Sequence record: PV593634.1
Length of the DNA: 64,000 bases
Direction: 5' to 3' (one strand)
Of this stretch, positions 1,065-30,050 are shown one piece after another. The translations under genes and the position numbers were made by a program. The notes beneath the pieces are model-generated. The model ran no database searches and was not told the DNA's origin. It saw nothing but the letters and a program-made list of their open reading frames with translations. Position 1 is the first letter of the stretch. Every line of letters starts with the position of its first letter.

Positions 1065-1670
1065 TTAGACGATTGCTTTAAGGTCTTCAATGAAGTAAAG
1101 GTTACCAGTGAACTTATCGATGTTGATAGAAGTGATGGTAAACTCACCAGAAGCTTTGGTTGTAGGATCCATAGCTGGCGCTGTGGTTACACCAATCTGA
1201 TCCCAATAGATGTCGTTCATCAAACGCATAACTACATCTGGATTAGCATCAGCTGAGTTCAGAACAATGGCATGCTTACCAACCATGTTCACATACACTA
1301 CACCTGGACCTTGTGTTCCGTTCTTAACTGCAAGAGTTAATTCTTCAACCGTACCGTAGGTGGTTACAACCACACCGAATTCGTTAAAGATAGGAACAAT
1401 GGTGATCTTCTCTACTTCAATATCAGCACGGAAGAAACCGGTTTTACGAGATAAGAAACAGCAGAGGACAATTCCACTACCTAAAGTAACTGGAGGTTCG
1501 ATCATCACATCTTCGTGACGTAAACCATCGTAACGCTGTTTAGCGAGTGTCAATTCGTCGCTTGGTCCTTCCGCTTCTAGTTTGGCGATACGATCAACCA
1601 TAAACTTTCGGGCAGATAAGAACACCGGATCATTTATCTTTTTACTGTTAACGCCTGAGACTGTGATCAT
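1065..1670 (-). CDS. hypothetical protein
   Basis: 201-aa ORF with normal codon usage, converging on hairpin. Confidence 0.8.
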   Translation of the reverse strand: MITVSGVNSKKINDPVFLSARKFMVDRIAKLEAEGPSDELTLAKQRYDGLRHEDVMIEPPVTLGSGIVLCCFLSRKTGFFRADIEVEKITIVPIFNEFGVVVTTYGTVEELTLAVKNGTQGPGVVYVNMVGKHAIVLNSADANPDVVMRLMNDIYWDQIGVTTAPAMDPTTKASGEFTITSINIDKFTGNLYFIEDLKAIV

Positions 1671-1760
1671 AATGGGCTACCTGTTAATAAAACTATTAGA
1701 GTATTTTGACTCGTTCCAAAAGATTCAAATGACTTATTACCCGTGTGTATAAAAATACAG

Positions 1761-1780
1761 ACAGATATTATTAAAGTGTA
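1761..1780 (+). promoter_or_regulatory. putative early promoter motif ACAGATATTATTAAAGTGTA
   Basis: motif recurs at several intergenic operon starts (8899, 14052, 29018, 53020 and others). Confidence 0.6.
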
Positions 1781-4782: not shown

Positions 4783-5607
4783 ATGACTAAGCAAGAACGT
4801 GATAACATCGTAGGCGTAACTTCATTTCAAACCTTACTTCGTGGCGTTGAGGTTTTTATTGAACAGGATGGGTTAAAACCAATTGAAATCAATGGGTTGG
4901 TTACCCAACCTTTATATGACGTATTAAACATGATGACCAGAATTACGTTTGGCGTACCTTATATTGGTAAGGATCCTCGTTTCGGTCAACAAGATTCTTT
5001 AACAGGTTTGCAGGATTGGTATAACCATGTGCGTTCTTTCGTAAATCAGGGGACTCAGTATTATCTCCACCCAATGGAGATTACTGGCGAGTGGGATATG
5101 GAAAGCTATCGTGGATTCCAATCCATCGTCGAATGCTACCGTCAACATACTCTAAAGAAAGAAGGGATAATCCATTCCGATATCTCTCGCATCAATTATC
5201 GTATTTCCGGTATTGATACAATCATATTCTCTAGCGAAACCCAGTTAGATGATTTCCATAAGTGTGCTACCTTAGCTACAGGTGTTCAGAACATCGAACA
5301 ATACCTGCCGTACATGAGAACCACTGGTTGGAAGTTTAGTGTTGGATGTACTGACGAAGGCTTCCCAGTTGGCGTTATCGCGTACAGTTTACCTAACCCG
5401 ATGATGGGTAATCAAGATACAGTTATTGCCGGTATCTATGTTGCTCCCGAACATCGTGGACGAGGTATCGGTAAAGCTTTGGTTAACGATGTGTTGACTG
5501 CATCCCAACCATATGACTATACAGTGGTGGCTAATAAGTCGGTAGGTCATGTACCAGGATGGTCGGATGTGATTAGTTTCCTTTCTCAGTTCAACGTCAA
5601 AATGTAA
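4783..5607 (+). CDS. protein with C-terminal GNAT acetyltransferase domain
   Basis: IAGIYVAPEHRGRGIGKALV acetyl-CoA binding motif A; N-terminal half unassigned. Confidence 0.85.
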   Translation: MTKQERDNIVGVTSFQTLLRGVEVFIEQDGLKPIEINGLVTQPLYDVLNMMTRITFGVPYIGKDPRFGQQDSLTGLQDWYNHVRSFVNQGTQYYLHPMEITGEWDMESYRGFQSIVECYRQHTLKKEGIIHSDISRINYRISGIDTIIFSSETQLDDFHKCATLATGVQNIEQYLPYMRTTGWKFSVGCTDEGFPVGVIAYSLPNPMMGNQDTVIAGIYVAPEHRGRGIGKALVNDVLTASQPYDYTVVANKSVGHVPGWSDVISFLSQFNVKM

Positions 5608-5638: not shown

Positions 5639-5663
5639 GTTCAGTTTCAGTTGTATTCTTTTT

Positions 5664-5691
5664 CAGACACATATAATTTAAGTGTAAATAC
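5664..5691 (+). promoter_or_regulatory. putative early promoter
   Basis: CAGACACATATAATTTAAGTGTAAATAC, near-identical to 12620..12647. Confidence 0.65.
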
Positions 5692-12020: not shown

Positions 12021-12605
12021 ATGGCCAGTTTATATTTCTATTATAGTTCCATGAATGCTGGGAAATCTATTGATCTGCTGCGTTCTAACTATAACTATCT
12101 TGAACGTGGGATGAAGACACTAGTCCTCAAACCCGCAATCGACACTCGTGAAGAAACGGCAGTCGTTCGCTCACGTATTGGGTTAGAGGTTGAGTGCGAC
12201 CTCTTCAAACCTGACGATAACCTATGGTGGGTTGTTAATCGCGCGCTGGGTATCACTAACCAGATCCATTGTATTTTCATAGATGAAGCACAGTTCTTAA
12301 CACCAGAACAAGTTAATCAATTAGGTCGCATCACTAACGAGCTTGATATTCCGGTTCTGTGTTATGGGTTACGGACTGACTTCCAGGGTAATCTTTTCCC
12401 AGGTTCTGCCAAGTTACTTGGTATTGCTGATAAGCTTACGGAATTGAAAACGATCTGTTGGTGTGGATCTAAAGCGACAATGGTTCTTCGTATGGACGAG
12501 GATGGTAATGTCGTTCGCGATGGTGCACAGGTCCAGGTTGGTGGTAACGACACTTATGTTTCTGTGTGTCGTAAACATCATGCTGATGGGCGTGGTCACT
12601 GTTAA
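12021..12605 (+). CDS. tdk: thymidine kinase
   Basis: SSMNAGKS, FIDEAQFL, YGLRTDFQGNLFPGS, CWCG, YVSVCRKH. Confidence 0.97.
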   Translation: MASLYFYYSSMNAGKSIDLLRSNYNYLERGMKTLVLKPAIDTREETAVVRSRIGLEVECDLFKPDDNLWWVVNRALGITNQIHCIFIDEAQFLTPEQVNQLGRITNELDIPVLCYGLRTDFQGNLFPGSAKLLGIADKLTELKTICWCGSKATMVLRMDEDGNVVRDGAQVQVGGNDTYVSVCRKHHADGRGHC

Positions 12606-12619
12606 GTTGGAAACTATTT

Positions 12620-12647
12620 CAGACCTATATCATCTAAGTGTAAATAC
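12620..12647 (+). promoter_or_regulatory. putative early promoter
   Basis: CAGACCTATATCATCTAAGTGTAAATAC, near-identical to 5664. Confidence 0.65.
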
Positions 12648-26450: not shown

Positions 26451-27128
26451 ATGAAAAACCGGAAAGAGATCGAACGTGACATTCTTGACATAGCCAAGAA
26501 GTTCACAGTTGGTGGTGGAAACCACAAGATCTATTCCGAACTGTTCGGGCATCTTGATGATGCCCAATTCGCTAAGTTCTGGAATACGATTTGTGACAGC
26601 AAGTTCATTCCAATGTTCGTGGATAACTTTAATCAGAAAGAAGGCATTAGTTATGACCATATCGTCAAGCTTGCCGTCGAGTACGATATTCCGCTAGAAC
26701 AGCAACTTGTTCTTACTGACCCAGATACTGGGTTACAATTCACAACTCCTGATACAGCTTTGGTCGGTTGTGCTGAAGCTCGTAAACAACGTCAGTTGCA
26801 AGCTAAGAAGTTTGGTGCATCTAAGCACGACTATGAAACGGAAGACTTGACTGGGCAACCTACGGGTGGTTCTAAAGCAGGTGGTATCTCTAACCCTGAG
26901 ATTCAAGTTCTTCTGTCCCTGGGTCTACCCACACTGGCTAAGGAATTAGCTGACGTTCGTGGTGGTGACTCTGGTGCATACCGCGCTTATAAGAATGACA
27001 TCCTTTCTTCTGGACGTGCTACAACTGAATCGGCTCTGGCTCGTGGTACGGGTGTTAAGTCTCTACAGACAGCGCACTACTTACTGATGGGTCAGCATAT
27101 CGATAACAACTTGAATGCGAGAGATTAA
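26451..27128 (+). CDS. rpoB: virion RNA polymerase beta C-terminal subunit (phiKZ gp149-like)
   Basis: LTGQPTGGSKAGGISNPEIQVLLSLG...ELADVRGGD matches RpoB C-terminal TQQPLGGKAQ.GGQRFGEME..L...G...QE...VKSDD. Confidence 0.85.
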   Translation: MKNRKEIERDILDIAKKFTVGGGNHKIYSELFGHLDDAQFAKFWNTICDSKFIPMFVDNFNQKEGISYDHIVKLAVEYDIPLEQQLVLTDPDTGLQFTTPDTALVGCAEARKQRQLQAKKFGASKHDYETEDLTGQPTGGSKAGGISNPEIQVLLSLGLPTLAKELADVRGGDSGAYRAYKNDILSSGRATTESALARGTGVKSLQTAHYLLMGQHIDNNLNARD

Positions 27129-27598: not shown

Positions 27599-28327
27599 AT
27601 GGATATTACTATCTACACAGAGATGGATTCATTATTCGATGTGAGGCGAGGAATTATTACCAAGGTTGCTCGTGAGTCTGGCAATAACAAGTTTGAGTGG
27701 GATAAGAACTTCAAAGAGATTTATGCTCGACGTCGTTTCGATTACTTCCACCAACCTGAGCTGGGGATTACGGACGAAGCTTATCAAGCTCGTTACGCTA
27801 AGCGCTCCCTGGCTGACTTCGCTGATCATCAAGAAGTATTCGTCTACCCAAGTAAACTGATTCACAACATCTTCAAGATCGTTCGTGAGATAGAGTTTGG
27901 TGTTGGACAGATTATCTCGGCATCAACTTTCGAATTAACAGTTAACCTATATCCTTATGTTCTGGAACAAGAACACATCGATGAGTTGAATTCTGTTATT
28001 CGTGGAGCTGTTCCGTTTAACATCAGTCTATCATTTGTAAACATTCCGTATGATAAAATTACTCCGGTGATTTTACATGCCTATCAGTACTGCTTCATTT
28101 ACGACTTCCTGACTTCTAAAGACCGGAAGACGTACTGGGAAAATTATATCCCAGCGGGAAACACGAACACACGTTTCATTGTCCCGGATGTGCTACTGAA
28201 CAAAGAACTACCCGATGAAATGAGAACCGAAGAGGCGATCACTTTAATTGGAAAACTGAATGTAACTCAAGGTGGTAAAATAACCTGGGTCCCATATCCC
28301 AAAACCATATTCGATTATAAAGAATAA
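27599..28327 (+). CDS. conserved hypothetical protein, degenerate HAD-like N-terminus
   Basis: IYTEMDSLFDVRRG resembles HAD motif I. Confidence 0.6.
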   Translation: MDITIYTEMDSLFDVRRGIITKVARESGNNKFEWDKNFKEIYARRRFDYFHQPELGITDEAYQARYAKRSLADFADHQEVFVYPSKLIHNIFKIVREIEFGVGQIISASTFELTVNLYPYVLEQEHIDELNSVIRGAVPFNISLSFVNIPYDKITPVILHAYQYCFIYDFLTSKDRKTYWENYIPAGNTNTRFIVPDVLLNKELPDEMRTEEAITLIGKLNVTQGGKITWVPYPKTIFDYKE

Positions 28328-28330
28328 GGT

Positions 28331-28364
28331 CAGCCTAGGAGCCCCGCAAGGGCTCCTAGGACTG
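28331..28364. terminator. bidirectional hairpin
   Basis: CCTAGGAGCCC-CGCAA-GGGCTCCTAGG between convergent ORFs. Confidence 0.85.
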
Positions 28365-28375
28365 TTTGCTGTCTG

Positions 28376-28978
28376 TTAGGATTCTGGATCCCAATCGGTG
28401 TCTTCATCTGGATCAGGTGCTTCGGAAGTATTAATGTCATGTTCGTCGTCGTCACCGAAGCTTGCTTCGATTTCTTTGGTGTCAACAACTTGGTGACCTT
28501 GCATAATCTCTTCAGGTCTGATCTCGTCGTCTGGATCTTCTATATGGATAATAGGAGCCAGTGGATCAAGTACGAAAGAGCTGGAACCGTAAGTAGGCAT
28601 GATGATCTTGCCGTTTGATACTTCTGTTAATGCGTTAACAAAGGTAGCAAAGTTAGCTCGGTTGTCTTCCAATTCTCTGTCCTTGAGTCTCTCTTTACGA
28701 TCGTCACGGATAGTCTTTTCAATCTGAGCTAAGATGGTATTAATGGAATCCATCAGCTTCGGGTTGTTAGGTTTGTTAATGATCGTCTGCATCGCAATAT
28801 CAAGTAACAGGTTACGTTGACGTTGAACAGTATTGATCAGGGTGCTTTCAGCTTCCTTGTCTTGAGGACCTTTAAGTAACTTATTTATCTCTGCAATCAA
28901 GGCGTCCTTATCTTGCACCGTTTTCAATTTATCATCAGACGGTGGGGCTGGATGAATCTCATCAGCGTGATCGAACAT
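28376..28978 (-). CDS. helical protein; candidate T4 gp16-like small terminase subunit
   Basis: 200-aa ORF; central helix pair resembles T4 gp16 (see findings); acidic tail. Confidence 0.45.
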   Translation of the reverse strand: MFDHADEIHPAPPSDDKLKTVQDKDALIAEINKLLKGPQDKEAESTLINTVQRQRNLLLDIAMQTIINKPNNPKLMDSINTILAQIEKTIRDDRKERLKDRELEDNRANFATFVNALTEVSNGKIIMPTYGSSSFVLDPLAPIIHIEDPDDEIRPEEIMQGHQVVDTKEIEASFGDDDEHDINTSEAPDPDEDTDWDPES

Positions 28979-29017
28979 AACTGGCTTCCTTATTCTTTAG
29001 TAACTATTAAATTATAG

Positions 29018-29037
29018 ACAGATATTATCAAAGTAGA
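29018..29037 (+). promoter_or_regulatory. putative early promoter motif
   Basis: ACAGATATTATCAAAGTAGA. Confidence 0.55.
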
Positions 29038-29089
29038 TACGGTGGAAATCTAATTTAATAATATCCGTTATTAAATCAGGACTGAGGTA

Positions 29090-29647
29090 ATGAAAATGTT
29101 TTTAGACAAACTGTTGAACAAGATTCCTTTCTTCCGTAATCGTCGAATCAAGAAGATAAAGGAACAGCTTGTTGCCATTAAAAATGATTTTAAAGAGGGA
29201 CACTTTAATGACGTATATATCAGTAGTCTTCACAATATCCTAAATAACCCGCTTGTAAGCTTCTCAGAGGAGCTAATCCGGTTATCATTGGGAAGTGTGG
29301 AGATGTATTCTAAGTCTTCTTCTGGAGCTTCTAAGCTCGTTAGTAAACCTATAATCTCGAGACCCACTCTTGAGAAATCGACAATCATTAGTTTAGAGGT
29401 GAAGAATAAATATGTATCAGAATGGTATTCGAATGAACAGACTTTATTAGAGTTTGTGGAAACTATGAAACTGTACTTACTGATTCAGTGTAAGATGTTT
29501 CAACCGGTGGATGCAAGGACTCACGAAGAACTTAACCAGCTCGGAGCAGGAACTGACCCAGACTTTTTAGACTCGGTATTGTATAGGTTACTGTTGTCCG
29601 ATCTCGTGAATATAACAACCTTCTACGTAGAGAGCAAATATGATTGA
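29090..29647 (+). CDS. hypothetical protein
   Basis: 185-aa ORF, GAGG SD. Confidence 0.8.
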   Translation: MKMFLDKLLNKIPFFRNRRIKKIKEQLVAIKNDFKEGHFNDVYISSLHNILNNPLVSFSEELIRLSLGSVEMYSKSSSGASKLVSKPIISRPTLEKSTIISLEVKNKYVSEWYSNEQTLLEFVETMKLYLLIQCKMFQPVDARTHEELNQLGAGTDPDFLDSVLYRLLLSDLVNITTFYVESKYD

Positions 29648-30050
29648 TAAGAACAAGACCGTTTCGTTTAGTAAGAATAAGAACTTTATTCCTTATGAAC
29701 AGTTGACGGACACACCCAGTCGTCTTTTCAGAAAGATCATTGATGTGTTGGAAATCAACAACGCGAAATGGAAAACGTATCTAGATGACTATTTACGTTG
29801 GCAACATCCAGAAGACTCTGGCACTCCCGCTGAAGTAAAACGCAACCGGAGCACAGCCTTAGGTAATCTGCAGAGTACCTTGTTTTATTCAAAGAACCTA
29901 ACATGGAACAAATTGTTGGTGGCTTTAAAAATCTGTCGCATTACCAAGATCAAGATTAGCTTGGAGATAGAAACAGAATCTGGTGAGCAACACACCATCT
30001 CTGAAACCACTTTACTGCGCAAGTCTCCGAAAGGAACCGTGGACGAGTAA
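29640..30050 (+). CDS. conserved phiKZ-like hypothetical protein
   Basis: LFRKI...W..YL..Y...R....GNL...L....LTW pattern recalled from phiKZ-like phages. Confidence 0.7.
   Translation: MIDKNKTVSFSKNKNFIPYEQLTDTPSRLFRKIIDVLEINNAKWKTYLDDYLRWQHPEDSGTPAEVKRNRSTALGNLQSTLFYSKNLTWNKLLVALKICRITKIKISLEIETESGEQHTISETTLLRKSPKGTVDE

Follow-up and report, generated by a model that had tools for sequence, protein, structure and literature searches.

The DNA analyzed here, referred to as the window, is a 64,000 nt stretch comprising positions 205,940-269,939 of Shewanella phage SXP01 (PV593634.1, 269,939 bp), i.e., the final 64 kb of the record. SXP01 is a phiKZ-like jumbo phage with virion RNA polymerase subunits, a gp181-like structural lysozyme, and the relatives OBP and EL. 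The phiKZ-like markers within the window are two genes for virion RNA polymerase beta-prime subunits and a UvsX-like gene, and a 2,424 aa structural lysozyme of the phiKZ gp181 type is also encoded there. The region is most closely related to that of N1M2, Yubaba/Sureiya, OBP, pEt-SU, and EL. The gene under study (target gene, Table 1) is deposited as XTB82814.1 with the annotation "hypothetical protein". It is a single minus-strand gene with plus-strand genes on both sides. Its GC content of 0.40 is not unusual compared with the values of 0.40-0.47 over the window. A first-pass annotation had quoted a peptide from this gene as evidence for a small terminase subunit similar to gp16 of phage T4, and the translation of the open reading frame does contain this peptide.

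Table 1. Features of the target locus. Positions refer to the window and residues to the translated target gene.
Feature	Position	Strand	Description
Target CDS	28376..28978	minus	ATG-to-stop ORF, 200 codons; stop codon 28376-28378
Peptide quoted in the first-pass annotation	28679..28819	minus	Residues 54-100 of the target translation
GC-rich hairpin	28334..28360		11-bp stem, 8 G-C pairs
Divergent intergenic region	28979..29095		117 bp; holds the presumed target promoter
Core promoter-like motif	29011..29031	minus	33-53 nt upstream of the start codon
Predicted helical core	28616..28936	minus	Residues 15-121; AlphaFold2 model, pLDDT ~80 in helices
Short gp16-like stretch	28718..28774	minus	Residues 69-87; hhalign; turn and start of H3, aligned with T4 gp16 76-94
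Conserved C-terminal region	28454..28615	minus	Residues 122-175; alignments and AlphaFold2; mostly non-helical
Predicted disordered acidic tail	28379..28453	minus	Residues 176-200; alignment and model; variable, net charge -13

The 48-bp gap between the target gene and a convergent gene for a 242 aa protein harbors a GC-rich hairpin, which by its sequence is likely to act as a bidirectional terminator. Upstream of the target gene, a block of about 60 nt of the divergent intergenic region showed strong conservation in OBP, and a part of the block's core could also be aligned in EL. The window contained four related copies of the core motif, compared with an expectation of 0.02. The minus strand carried all of them, and one was located upstream of a second lone minus-strand gene (1065..1670). 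A scan for sigma-70-type promoters gave no result above chance; promoters of this type are not relevant to these phages. The target gene lies between the candidate promoter and the terminator-like hairpin, and a single-gene unit has been mapped experimentally for the phiKZ orthologue alone: PHIKZ169 forms the unit TU123, which has a start and a terminator of its own, as determined by ONT-cappable-seq (10.1101/2023.10.13.562163).

A large protein database contained 70 homologues of the target protein with 46-95% identity, and tblastn detected the gene in 68 phage records, which were from jumbo phages without exception. Among the tblastn matches listed, all 60 of the 60 annotated rows carried the label "hypothetical protein". 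An alignment of 26 sequences of this family (family A) showed 18 invariant columns. Homologues, phage records, and invariant columns together confirmed at the level of sequence comparison that the target is a real gene. Searching 1.84 billion representative proteins with a profile of the family returned 25 clusters only, all with E<1e-10, and no relatives outside these clusters; by this search family A is sharply bounded. The target falls into phrog_14363, which is listed in PHROGs with function unknown. Searches of Pfam, PHROGs, and PDB with the single sequence assigned no function, and the family profiles retrieved chance-level helical matches alone from PDB sequences and Pfam, e.g., TINF2_N and alpha-catenin.

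The target protein has a mass of 22.6 kDa and is very acidic (pI 4.34). We modeled its structure by AlphaFold2 from an alignment of 29 sequences; the alignment for the structure and search steps had been rebuilt without the EL and OBP gene translations. The model reached a mean pLDDT of 68.6, with values of about 80 in the helices, and a pTM of 0.31. Three helices were predicted, H1 (residues 15-36), H2 (41-68), and H3 (73-121), and a turn containing proline at residues 69-72 joins H2 to the long H3. The helices are charge-balanced. H3 is the best-conserved segment of the protein (the commonest residue has an average share of 0.85), and the near-invariant residues Q52, R55, and P70 are also located in the helical core. 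The following segment (residues 122-175) is predicted to be largely non-helical with two short helices. Within family A, P128 and D138 of this segment are invariant and P139, E157, and G161 are invariant or nearly so; E157 is near-invariant over the whole superfamily described below. The segment probably binds a partner. Several members of the family lack the acidic tail, and a long tail is confined to a part of family A. The first-pass annotation had described a layout of helical hairpin, short beta segment, and acidic tail as in T4 gp16. The helical core and the acidic tail were recovered, whereas the model predicted no beta segment and consists of three helices, the conserved coil, and the tail. 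Pfam scans of the family revealed no DNA-binding domain, the model contains no helix-turn-helix (H1 and H2 span 22 and 28 residues), and the calculation of charge by segment revealed no net-basic segment in the target protein.

The neighborhood of the target gene is conserved in EL, where the counterpart is ORF178, and in OBP (gp271). The gene order is a UvsX-like gene, a small ORF, a gene for a 225 aa protein that is annotated as RNA polymerase beta-type subunit in relatives, one or two small ORFs, a gene for a protein of about 240 aa, the lone gene on the opposite strand, two small ORFs, and a gene for a structural protein of about 360 aa. In phage PCH45 five flanking genes matched those of the window at 23-33% identity, and the equivalent place is occupied by a 174 aa gene, which is also alone on the opposite strand. 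The same lone-gene arrangement was found in EL, OBP, PCH45, phiKZ, 2050HW, PhiEaH1, FBKp24, Noxifer, 201phi2-1, PhiPA3, Totoro, Goslar, SPN3US, and Simmy50, so that the gene was present in 15 of 15 genomes examined, SXP01 included.

BLAST and pairwise comparison of the target protein with PCH45 gp77 or phiKZ gp169 gave no similarity above noise. These two proteins belong to a second family (family B), which also includes 201phi2-1 gp255, PhiPA3 gp198, 2050HW_00084, FBKp24_337, Noxifer_185, and the proteins of PhiEaH1 and Totoro. Family B corresponds to PHROG 5894 with 86 records, and family A (PHROG 14363), to which EL ORF178 and OBP gp271 belong, stands as a separate PHROG. A first comparison of small profiles of the target and PCH45 gp77 revealed no link; the link between the families surfaced only once family B had been enlarged and bridging sequences had been added. 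The comparison of family A (29 sequences) with family B (17 sequences) by hhalign resulted in a score of 30.8 (E 4.7e-4) over 126 colinear columns, whereas 120 column- or block-shuffled profiles did not exceed 22.9 and reversed profiles scored 13-14. Three further lineages, in which BLAST matched neither family, also carry the lone gene: Goslar (gp199), SPN3US (ACQ60_gp046), and Simmy50 (gp160). The SPN3US and Simmy50 proteins are the bridging sequences and matched the HMMs of both families, with E-values of 8e-7 and 5e-6 for family A and of 1e-21 and 3e-8 for family B, respectively.

In the merged alignment of 57 sequences Q52, R55, P70, and E157 were each conserved in at least 90% of the sequences. 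A model of the gp169 family (pLDDT 62, pTM about 0.3) showed the same order of structural elements as the target model, in the register of the hhalign alignment. Synteny, profiles, bridging sequences, shared residues, and models identify the target as the divergent SXP01 orthologue of phiKZ gp169, and both PHROG families and several orphan genes form one fast-evolving superfamily that is found in every chimallivirus lineage examined. PCH45 gp77 has no assignment to the published core genome (10.64898/2025.12.19.695335), likely because sequences of the family diverge too rapidly to be grouped by routine clustering.

Published transposon data from phages other than SXP01 show that the orthologues are fitness-essential in two relatives, phiKZ and PCH45. 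The PCH45 Tn-seq preprint lists "the small terminase (gp77)" as essential (10.64898/2025.12.19.695335). The gp numbers in this preprint are ordinal, as Gp72 (UvsX), gp81 (head protease), and gp87/88 (vRNAP) agreed with our own counts and BLAST results, and gp77 is therefore the orthologue of the target. In the phiKZ Tn-seq data PHIKZ169 had 3 reads and 1 insertion after trimming, compared to 18,186 reads and 16 insertions for PHIKZ168 and 5,011 reads and 10 insertions for PHIKZ172; the large terminase gene PHIKZ025 had 0 reads and 0 insertions (PMC12676376). Since the threshold of that study was >4 reads per insertion (PMC12676376), PHIKZ169 is among the genes without disruptive insertions. 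PHIKZ169 is monocistronic and convergent with its neighbor, and a polar artefact is therefore unlikely. The orthologue has no structural label in the records of phiKZ, 201phi2-1, OBP, 2050HW, PhiEaH1, FBKp24, and Totoro, while its neighbors carry one; virion status was judged here by these labels.

The first-pass annotation had stated that no small terminase is established for phiKZ-like phages. This agrees with reviews and the core-genome study, in which the large terminase is the sole terminase entry, and the phiKZ Tn-seq paper also names the large terminase (gp25) alone (PMC12676376). The exception is PCH45 gp77, the label of which is attributed to unspecified BLAST, HHpred, AlphaFold-database, and Foldseek searches, the basis not being presented (10.64898/2025.12.19.695335). 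Our searches did not reproduce this label. The literature searched for a small terminase of phiKZ, SPN3US, chimallin phages, or jumbo phages yielded the PCH45 preprint label alone, and no report of a member of the family binding the large terminase was found there.

We compared the target with the true T4 gp16 (taken from OL964735.1) and with a gp16-family profile of 30 sequences from T4-like, Aeromonas, Vibrio, cyanophage, and Pseudoalteromonas phages. BLASTP of the target against T4 gp16 gave no match. The target-family profile scored at noise level against T4 gp16 alone (hhalign score 16.4, probability 0.6%), and the best local alignment (target 54-94 with gp16 59-101, 25% identity) covered the stretch that had been flagged in the first-pass annotation. 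Against the gp16 family, family A reached a score of 16.1, which is within the range of block shuffles (13.8 +/- 1.8, maximum 18.6), and family B reached 12.8. The superfamily of 57 sequences scored higher, with 21.2 (21.8 reciprocally), an E-value of 0.018, and a probability of 2.6% over 19 columns. This score was reached by none of 399 shuffles of 12-column blocks, none of 150 shuffles of 30-column blocks, and neither of two reversed profiles. Of the pattern that the first-pass annotation had seen as shared with gp16, this much stood: the same stretch gave the best alignments, and 19 columns outscored the shuffled profiles, although the probability was never above 2.6%. As far as sequence profiles can tell, the likeness over 19 columns is reproducible, yet far too short to establish homology.

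Other searches gave no support for membership in the T4 gp16 family. A Pfam scan of 26 family members returned no terminase family at E<=1, and no terminase was matched in PHROGs, in sequence-profile searches of PDB, or in the profile search of 1.84 billion proteins. When the target and gp169 models were compared with PDB by Foldseek, nothing was retrieved at E<=0.001 and no terminase was among the best 50 matches; the best E-values were 0.57 and 2.4, and the matches were generic helical bundles and coiled coils. For models with pLDDT values of 69 and 62, it has to be considered that simple helical folds discriminate poorly in this type of search. Among viral predicted structures one member of the target's own family was significant, and no terminase was found. 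The comparison with PF11053/gp16 by profile and by structure, as suggested in the first-pass annotation, gave no significant match, and the assignment to this family was not upheld. Genomic position was also different. In T4, RB43, and Vibrio phage R10Z, gene 16 directly adjoins gene 17 or overlaps with it, and a single small ORF separates the two genes in Aeromonas phage AS-zj. The 64-kb window has no terminase annotation, and the target gene does not neighbor a large terminase gene.

We infer from these data that the target protein may be an oligomerizing adaptor that acts inside the infected cell. Its likeliest specific role would be that of a small-terminase-like partner of the large terminase, which would help to start or regulate genome packaging. 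The subunits would oligomerize through the H2-turn-H3 hairpin as the core and would make contact with the large terminase by the conserved C-terminal segment. We put forward this role for the target family as a leading guess and hold it tentatively. Several points led us to give it this weight: tailed phages with headful packaging are expected to have a small terminase subunit, none is known here, few small, essential, and conserved non-virion proteins are left unassigned, one group has independently given this label to an orthologue, and the sole outside resemblance is to gp16. We also lean to this role because the protein is similar to the gp16 family in size, charge, and helical core. The missing terminase match, the missing DNA-binding domain, the lack of a nearby large terminase gene, and the moderate confidence of the models argue against it and keep it tentative. 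Essentiality and the lack of a virion label fit many other roles equally well.

One such role, possible and only slightly less likely than the leading one, is that of an essential morphogenesis factor outside the virion, i.e., a scaffold- or chaperone-like helical protein that would assist in head, tail, or inner-body assembly and would then be released. As modeled, a small, acidic, elongated, helical protein with a disordered acidic tail would suit this function. The target gene is located among genes annotated as virion structural, with the head protease gene close by in phiKZ and PCH45, and the orthologues are essential yet without a structural label. Foldseek, moreover, retrieved only generic helical bundles and coiled coils. 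On the other hand, Pfam, PHROGs, PDB, and Foldseek revealed no similarity to known scaffold or chaperone families, and H3 and the polar residues Q52, R55, and E157 are very highly conserved, which points to an interface with a specific partner rather than to a loose scaffold.

It is unlikely that the target protein is a nucleic-acid or gene-expression factor of the phage nucleus, such as one that assists the phage RNA polymerases, replication, or the neighboring UvsX-like recombinase. The conserved block that the gene shares with the UvsX-like gene and the putative RNA polymerase beta-type subunit, a promoter class different from that of the neighbors, and the essential orthologues are consistent with such a function. 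However, the protein is strongly acidic and has neither a basic patch nor a DNA- or RNA-binding domain, the studies of phiKZ and PCH45 do not name it among the polymerase subunits and import factors that they describe, and UvsX itself is non-essential in PCH45 (10.64898/2025.12.19.695335).

We consider it quite improbable that the target is an extremely diverged true member of the T4 gp16 family (PF11053), which would be a special case of the small-terminase-like role. Three independent comparisons placed the best local profile alignment on the same stretch, the superfamily score of 21.2/21.8 was above all 549 shuffled and both reversed controls, and length and pI are alike. Against this stand the mere 19 aligned columns with their low hhalign probability, family A alone at noise level and family B alone with a score of 12.8, the lack of support from Pfam, PHROGs, PDB, and Foldseek, and the lack of synteny with the large terminase. 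It is equally improbable that the gp169 superfamily is the missing small terminase, forms rings, and shares a common ancestor with T4 gp16 of which the hairpin-turn motif is the sole trace. In this reading, the adaptor would link the replicated genome in the phage nucleus to shell-docked capsids, and the unusual, universally conserved opposite-strand unit would time its synthesis apart from that of the structural-gene neighbors. Any relation to T4 gp16 is too remote to be demonstrated; the target protein is better regarded as a possible functional analogue than as a family member. A transcriptome paper had suggested that PHIKZ169 is "moron-like" as a single-gene unit on the opposite strand. 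A promoter and a terminator of its own and the location within an opposite-strand cluster would fit a horizontally acquired, dispensable gene. Such a gene is nevertheless extremely improbable and this reading was rejected, since every lineage examined (15 of 15 genomes) has the gene at one conserved place and in one orientation instead of a sporadic distribution, the orthologues are essential in two phages, and the GC content is not unusual.

The small terminase idea was already known for this locus as a bare label in one preprint (10.64898/2025.12.19.695335). The unified superfamily, the conserved transcription architecture, and the calibrated negative test of gp16 kinship are new, and distribution and essentiality correct the published "moron-like" reading of PHIKZ169. 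The results bear on the question of how nucleus-forming jumbo phages recognize their DNA and how this DNA leaves the protein-shelled nucleus for the docked capsids. They yield one well-defined candidate, which is essential, has no structural label, is transcribed separately (as mapped in phiKZ), and is present in every lineage examined. Should the protein turn out to have no part in the terminase, it would remain an essential factor in each of these lineages.

Small terminases fall into several classes besides the T4 gp16 type, namely those of lambda (Nu1), P22 (gp3), SPP1/SF6 (G1P), HK97, and thermophilic phages, and they usually carry an N-terminal helix-turn-helix. None of these classes was returned by the sequence or fold searches, and the target protein has no predicted N-terminal helix-turn-helix domain; a functional analogy, with the target protein as a small oligomer that partners the large terminase, is possible. 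Proteins of the T4 gp16 type (PF11053) form rings of 11 or 12 subunits through a helical hairpin, as solved for a T4 relative, and they bind the large terminase and modulate its ATPase and nuclease. The modeled H2-turn-H3 of the target would be compatible with rings of this type but is generic. The target and the gp16 family (143-191 aa, pI 4.3-5.4 among the 30 sequences) are both small and acidic, and the core of the target is helical by model, which is an unspecific likeness. The local likeness over 19 columns affects the turn and the start of the long helix, while a significant profile or fold match and the adjacency to the large terminase gene are absent. With the gp169 superfamily, in contrast, the target shares the genomic position, the orientation, the size (150-210 aa), the acidic pI, and the order of helices.

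The small genes across the divergent promoter region from our target, the SXP01 orthologue of phiKZ gp169, correspond to two small phiKZ genes, gp170 and gp171, with the counterparts in the window listed in the table below. The second of these counterparts, the 136-aa ORF, also has counterparts by synteny in the phiKZ-like phages OBP and EL. Transposon insertions in gp170 and gp171 were zero in the phiKZ data set (PMC12676376). Both are likewise essential and functionally uncharacterised genes, and we therefore concluded that the divergent region governs several essential uncharacterised genes.

Four copies of a 17-nt motif, one of them upstream of the target, occurred in the window, compared to 0.02 occurrences expected, and all four were on the minus strand. 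One copy was located about 85 nt upstream of a second lone minus-strand gene. Two others lay in gaps between plus-strand genes, and no obvious minus-strand ORF was seen downstream of either; for this reason, they may represent antisense or regulatory sites. The motif possibly defines a distinct phage promoter class.

Features of the SXP01 window (window positions)
Feature	Position	Strand	Remark
17-nt motif	1755..1771	-	motif recurrence
17-nt motif	5661..5677	-	motif recurrence
17-nt motif	12617..12633	-	motif recurrence
17-nt motif	29012..29028	-	motif recurrence
Second lone gene	1065..1670	-	
274-aa ORF	4783..5607	+	falls within annotation gap of deposited record
Thymidine kinase	12021..12605	+	53-58% identity to T4-like (Straboviridae) phage thymidine kinases
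225-aa protein	26451..27128	+	record label 'putative virion structural protein'
242-aa protein	27599..28327	+	upstream neighbour; PHROG 3328; homologue of PCH45 gp76
gp170/gp171 counterpart	29096..29647		
136-aa ORF (gp170/gp171 counterpart)	29640..30050	+	not annotated in record; strong PHROG match (phrog_7801, 2e-40)

The deposited SXP01 record, with 193 CDSs over 270 kb, is under-annotated. Three neighbouring genes have a recorded start codon that disagrees with the first in-frame start of the ORF scan (29090/29096, 30118/30145, and 26058/26088), but these discrepancies are minor. PHROG 3233 and the annotations of relatives name the 225-aa protein RNA polymerase beta subunit. It was found in 294 phage records, covering all chimallivirus lineages, and additionally in one Bacillus jumbo phage. 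In phiKZ, 201phi2-1, and PhiPA3, about 20 kb separate its gene from the gp169 orthologue, which indicates that the gene block is rearranged in these phages.

PCH45 gp76, the homologue of the 242-aa neighbour, is listed as a non-essential, chimallin-specific core gene with unassigned function in a Tn-seq preprint (10.64898/2025.12.19.695335). Many insertions were tolerated as well in phiKZ gp168, which occupies the equivalent position (PMC12676376). Among the matches listed, the SXP01 thymidine kinase was nearer to the T4-like versions than to those of most other jumbo phages. This likeness at the sequence level suggests that genes were exchanged between the T4-like and jumbo phage groups.
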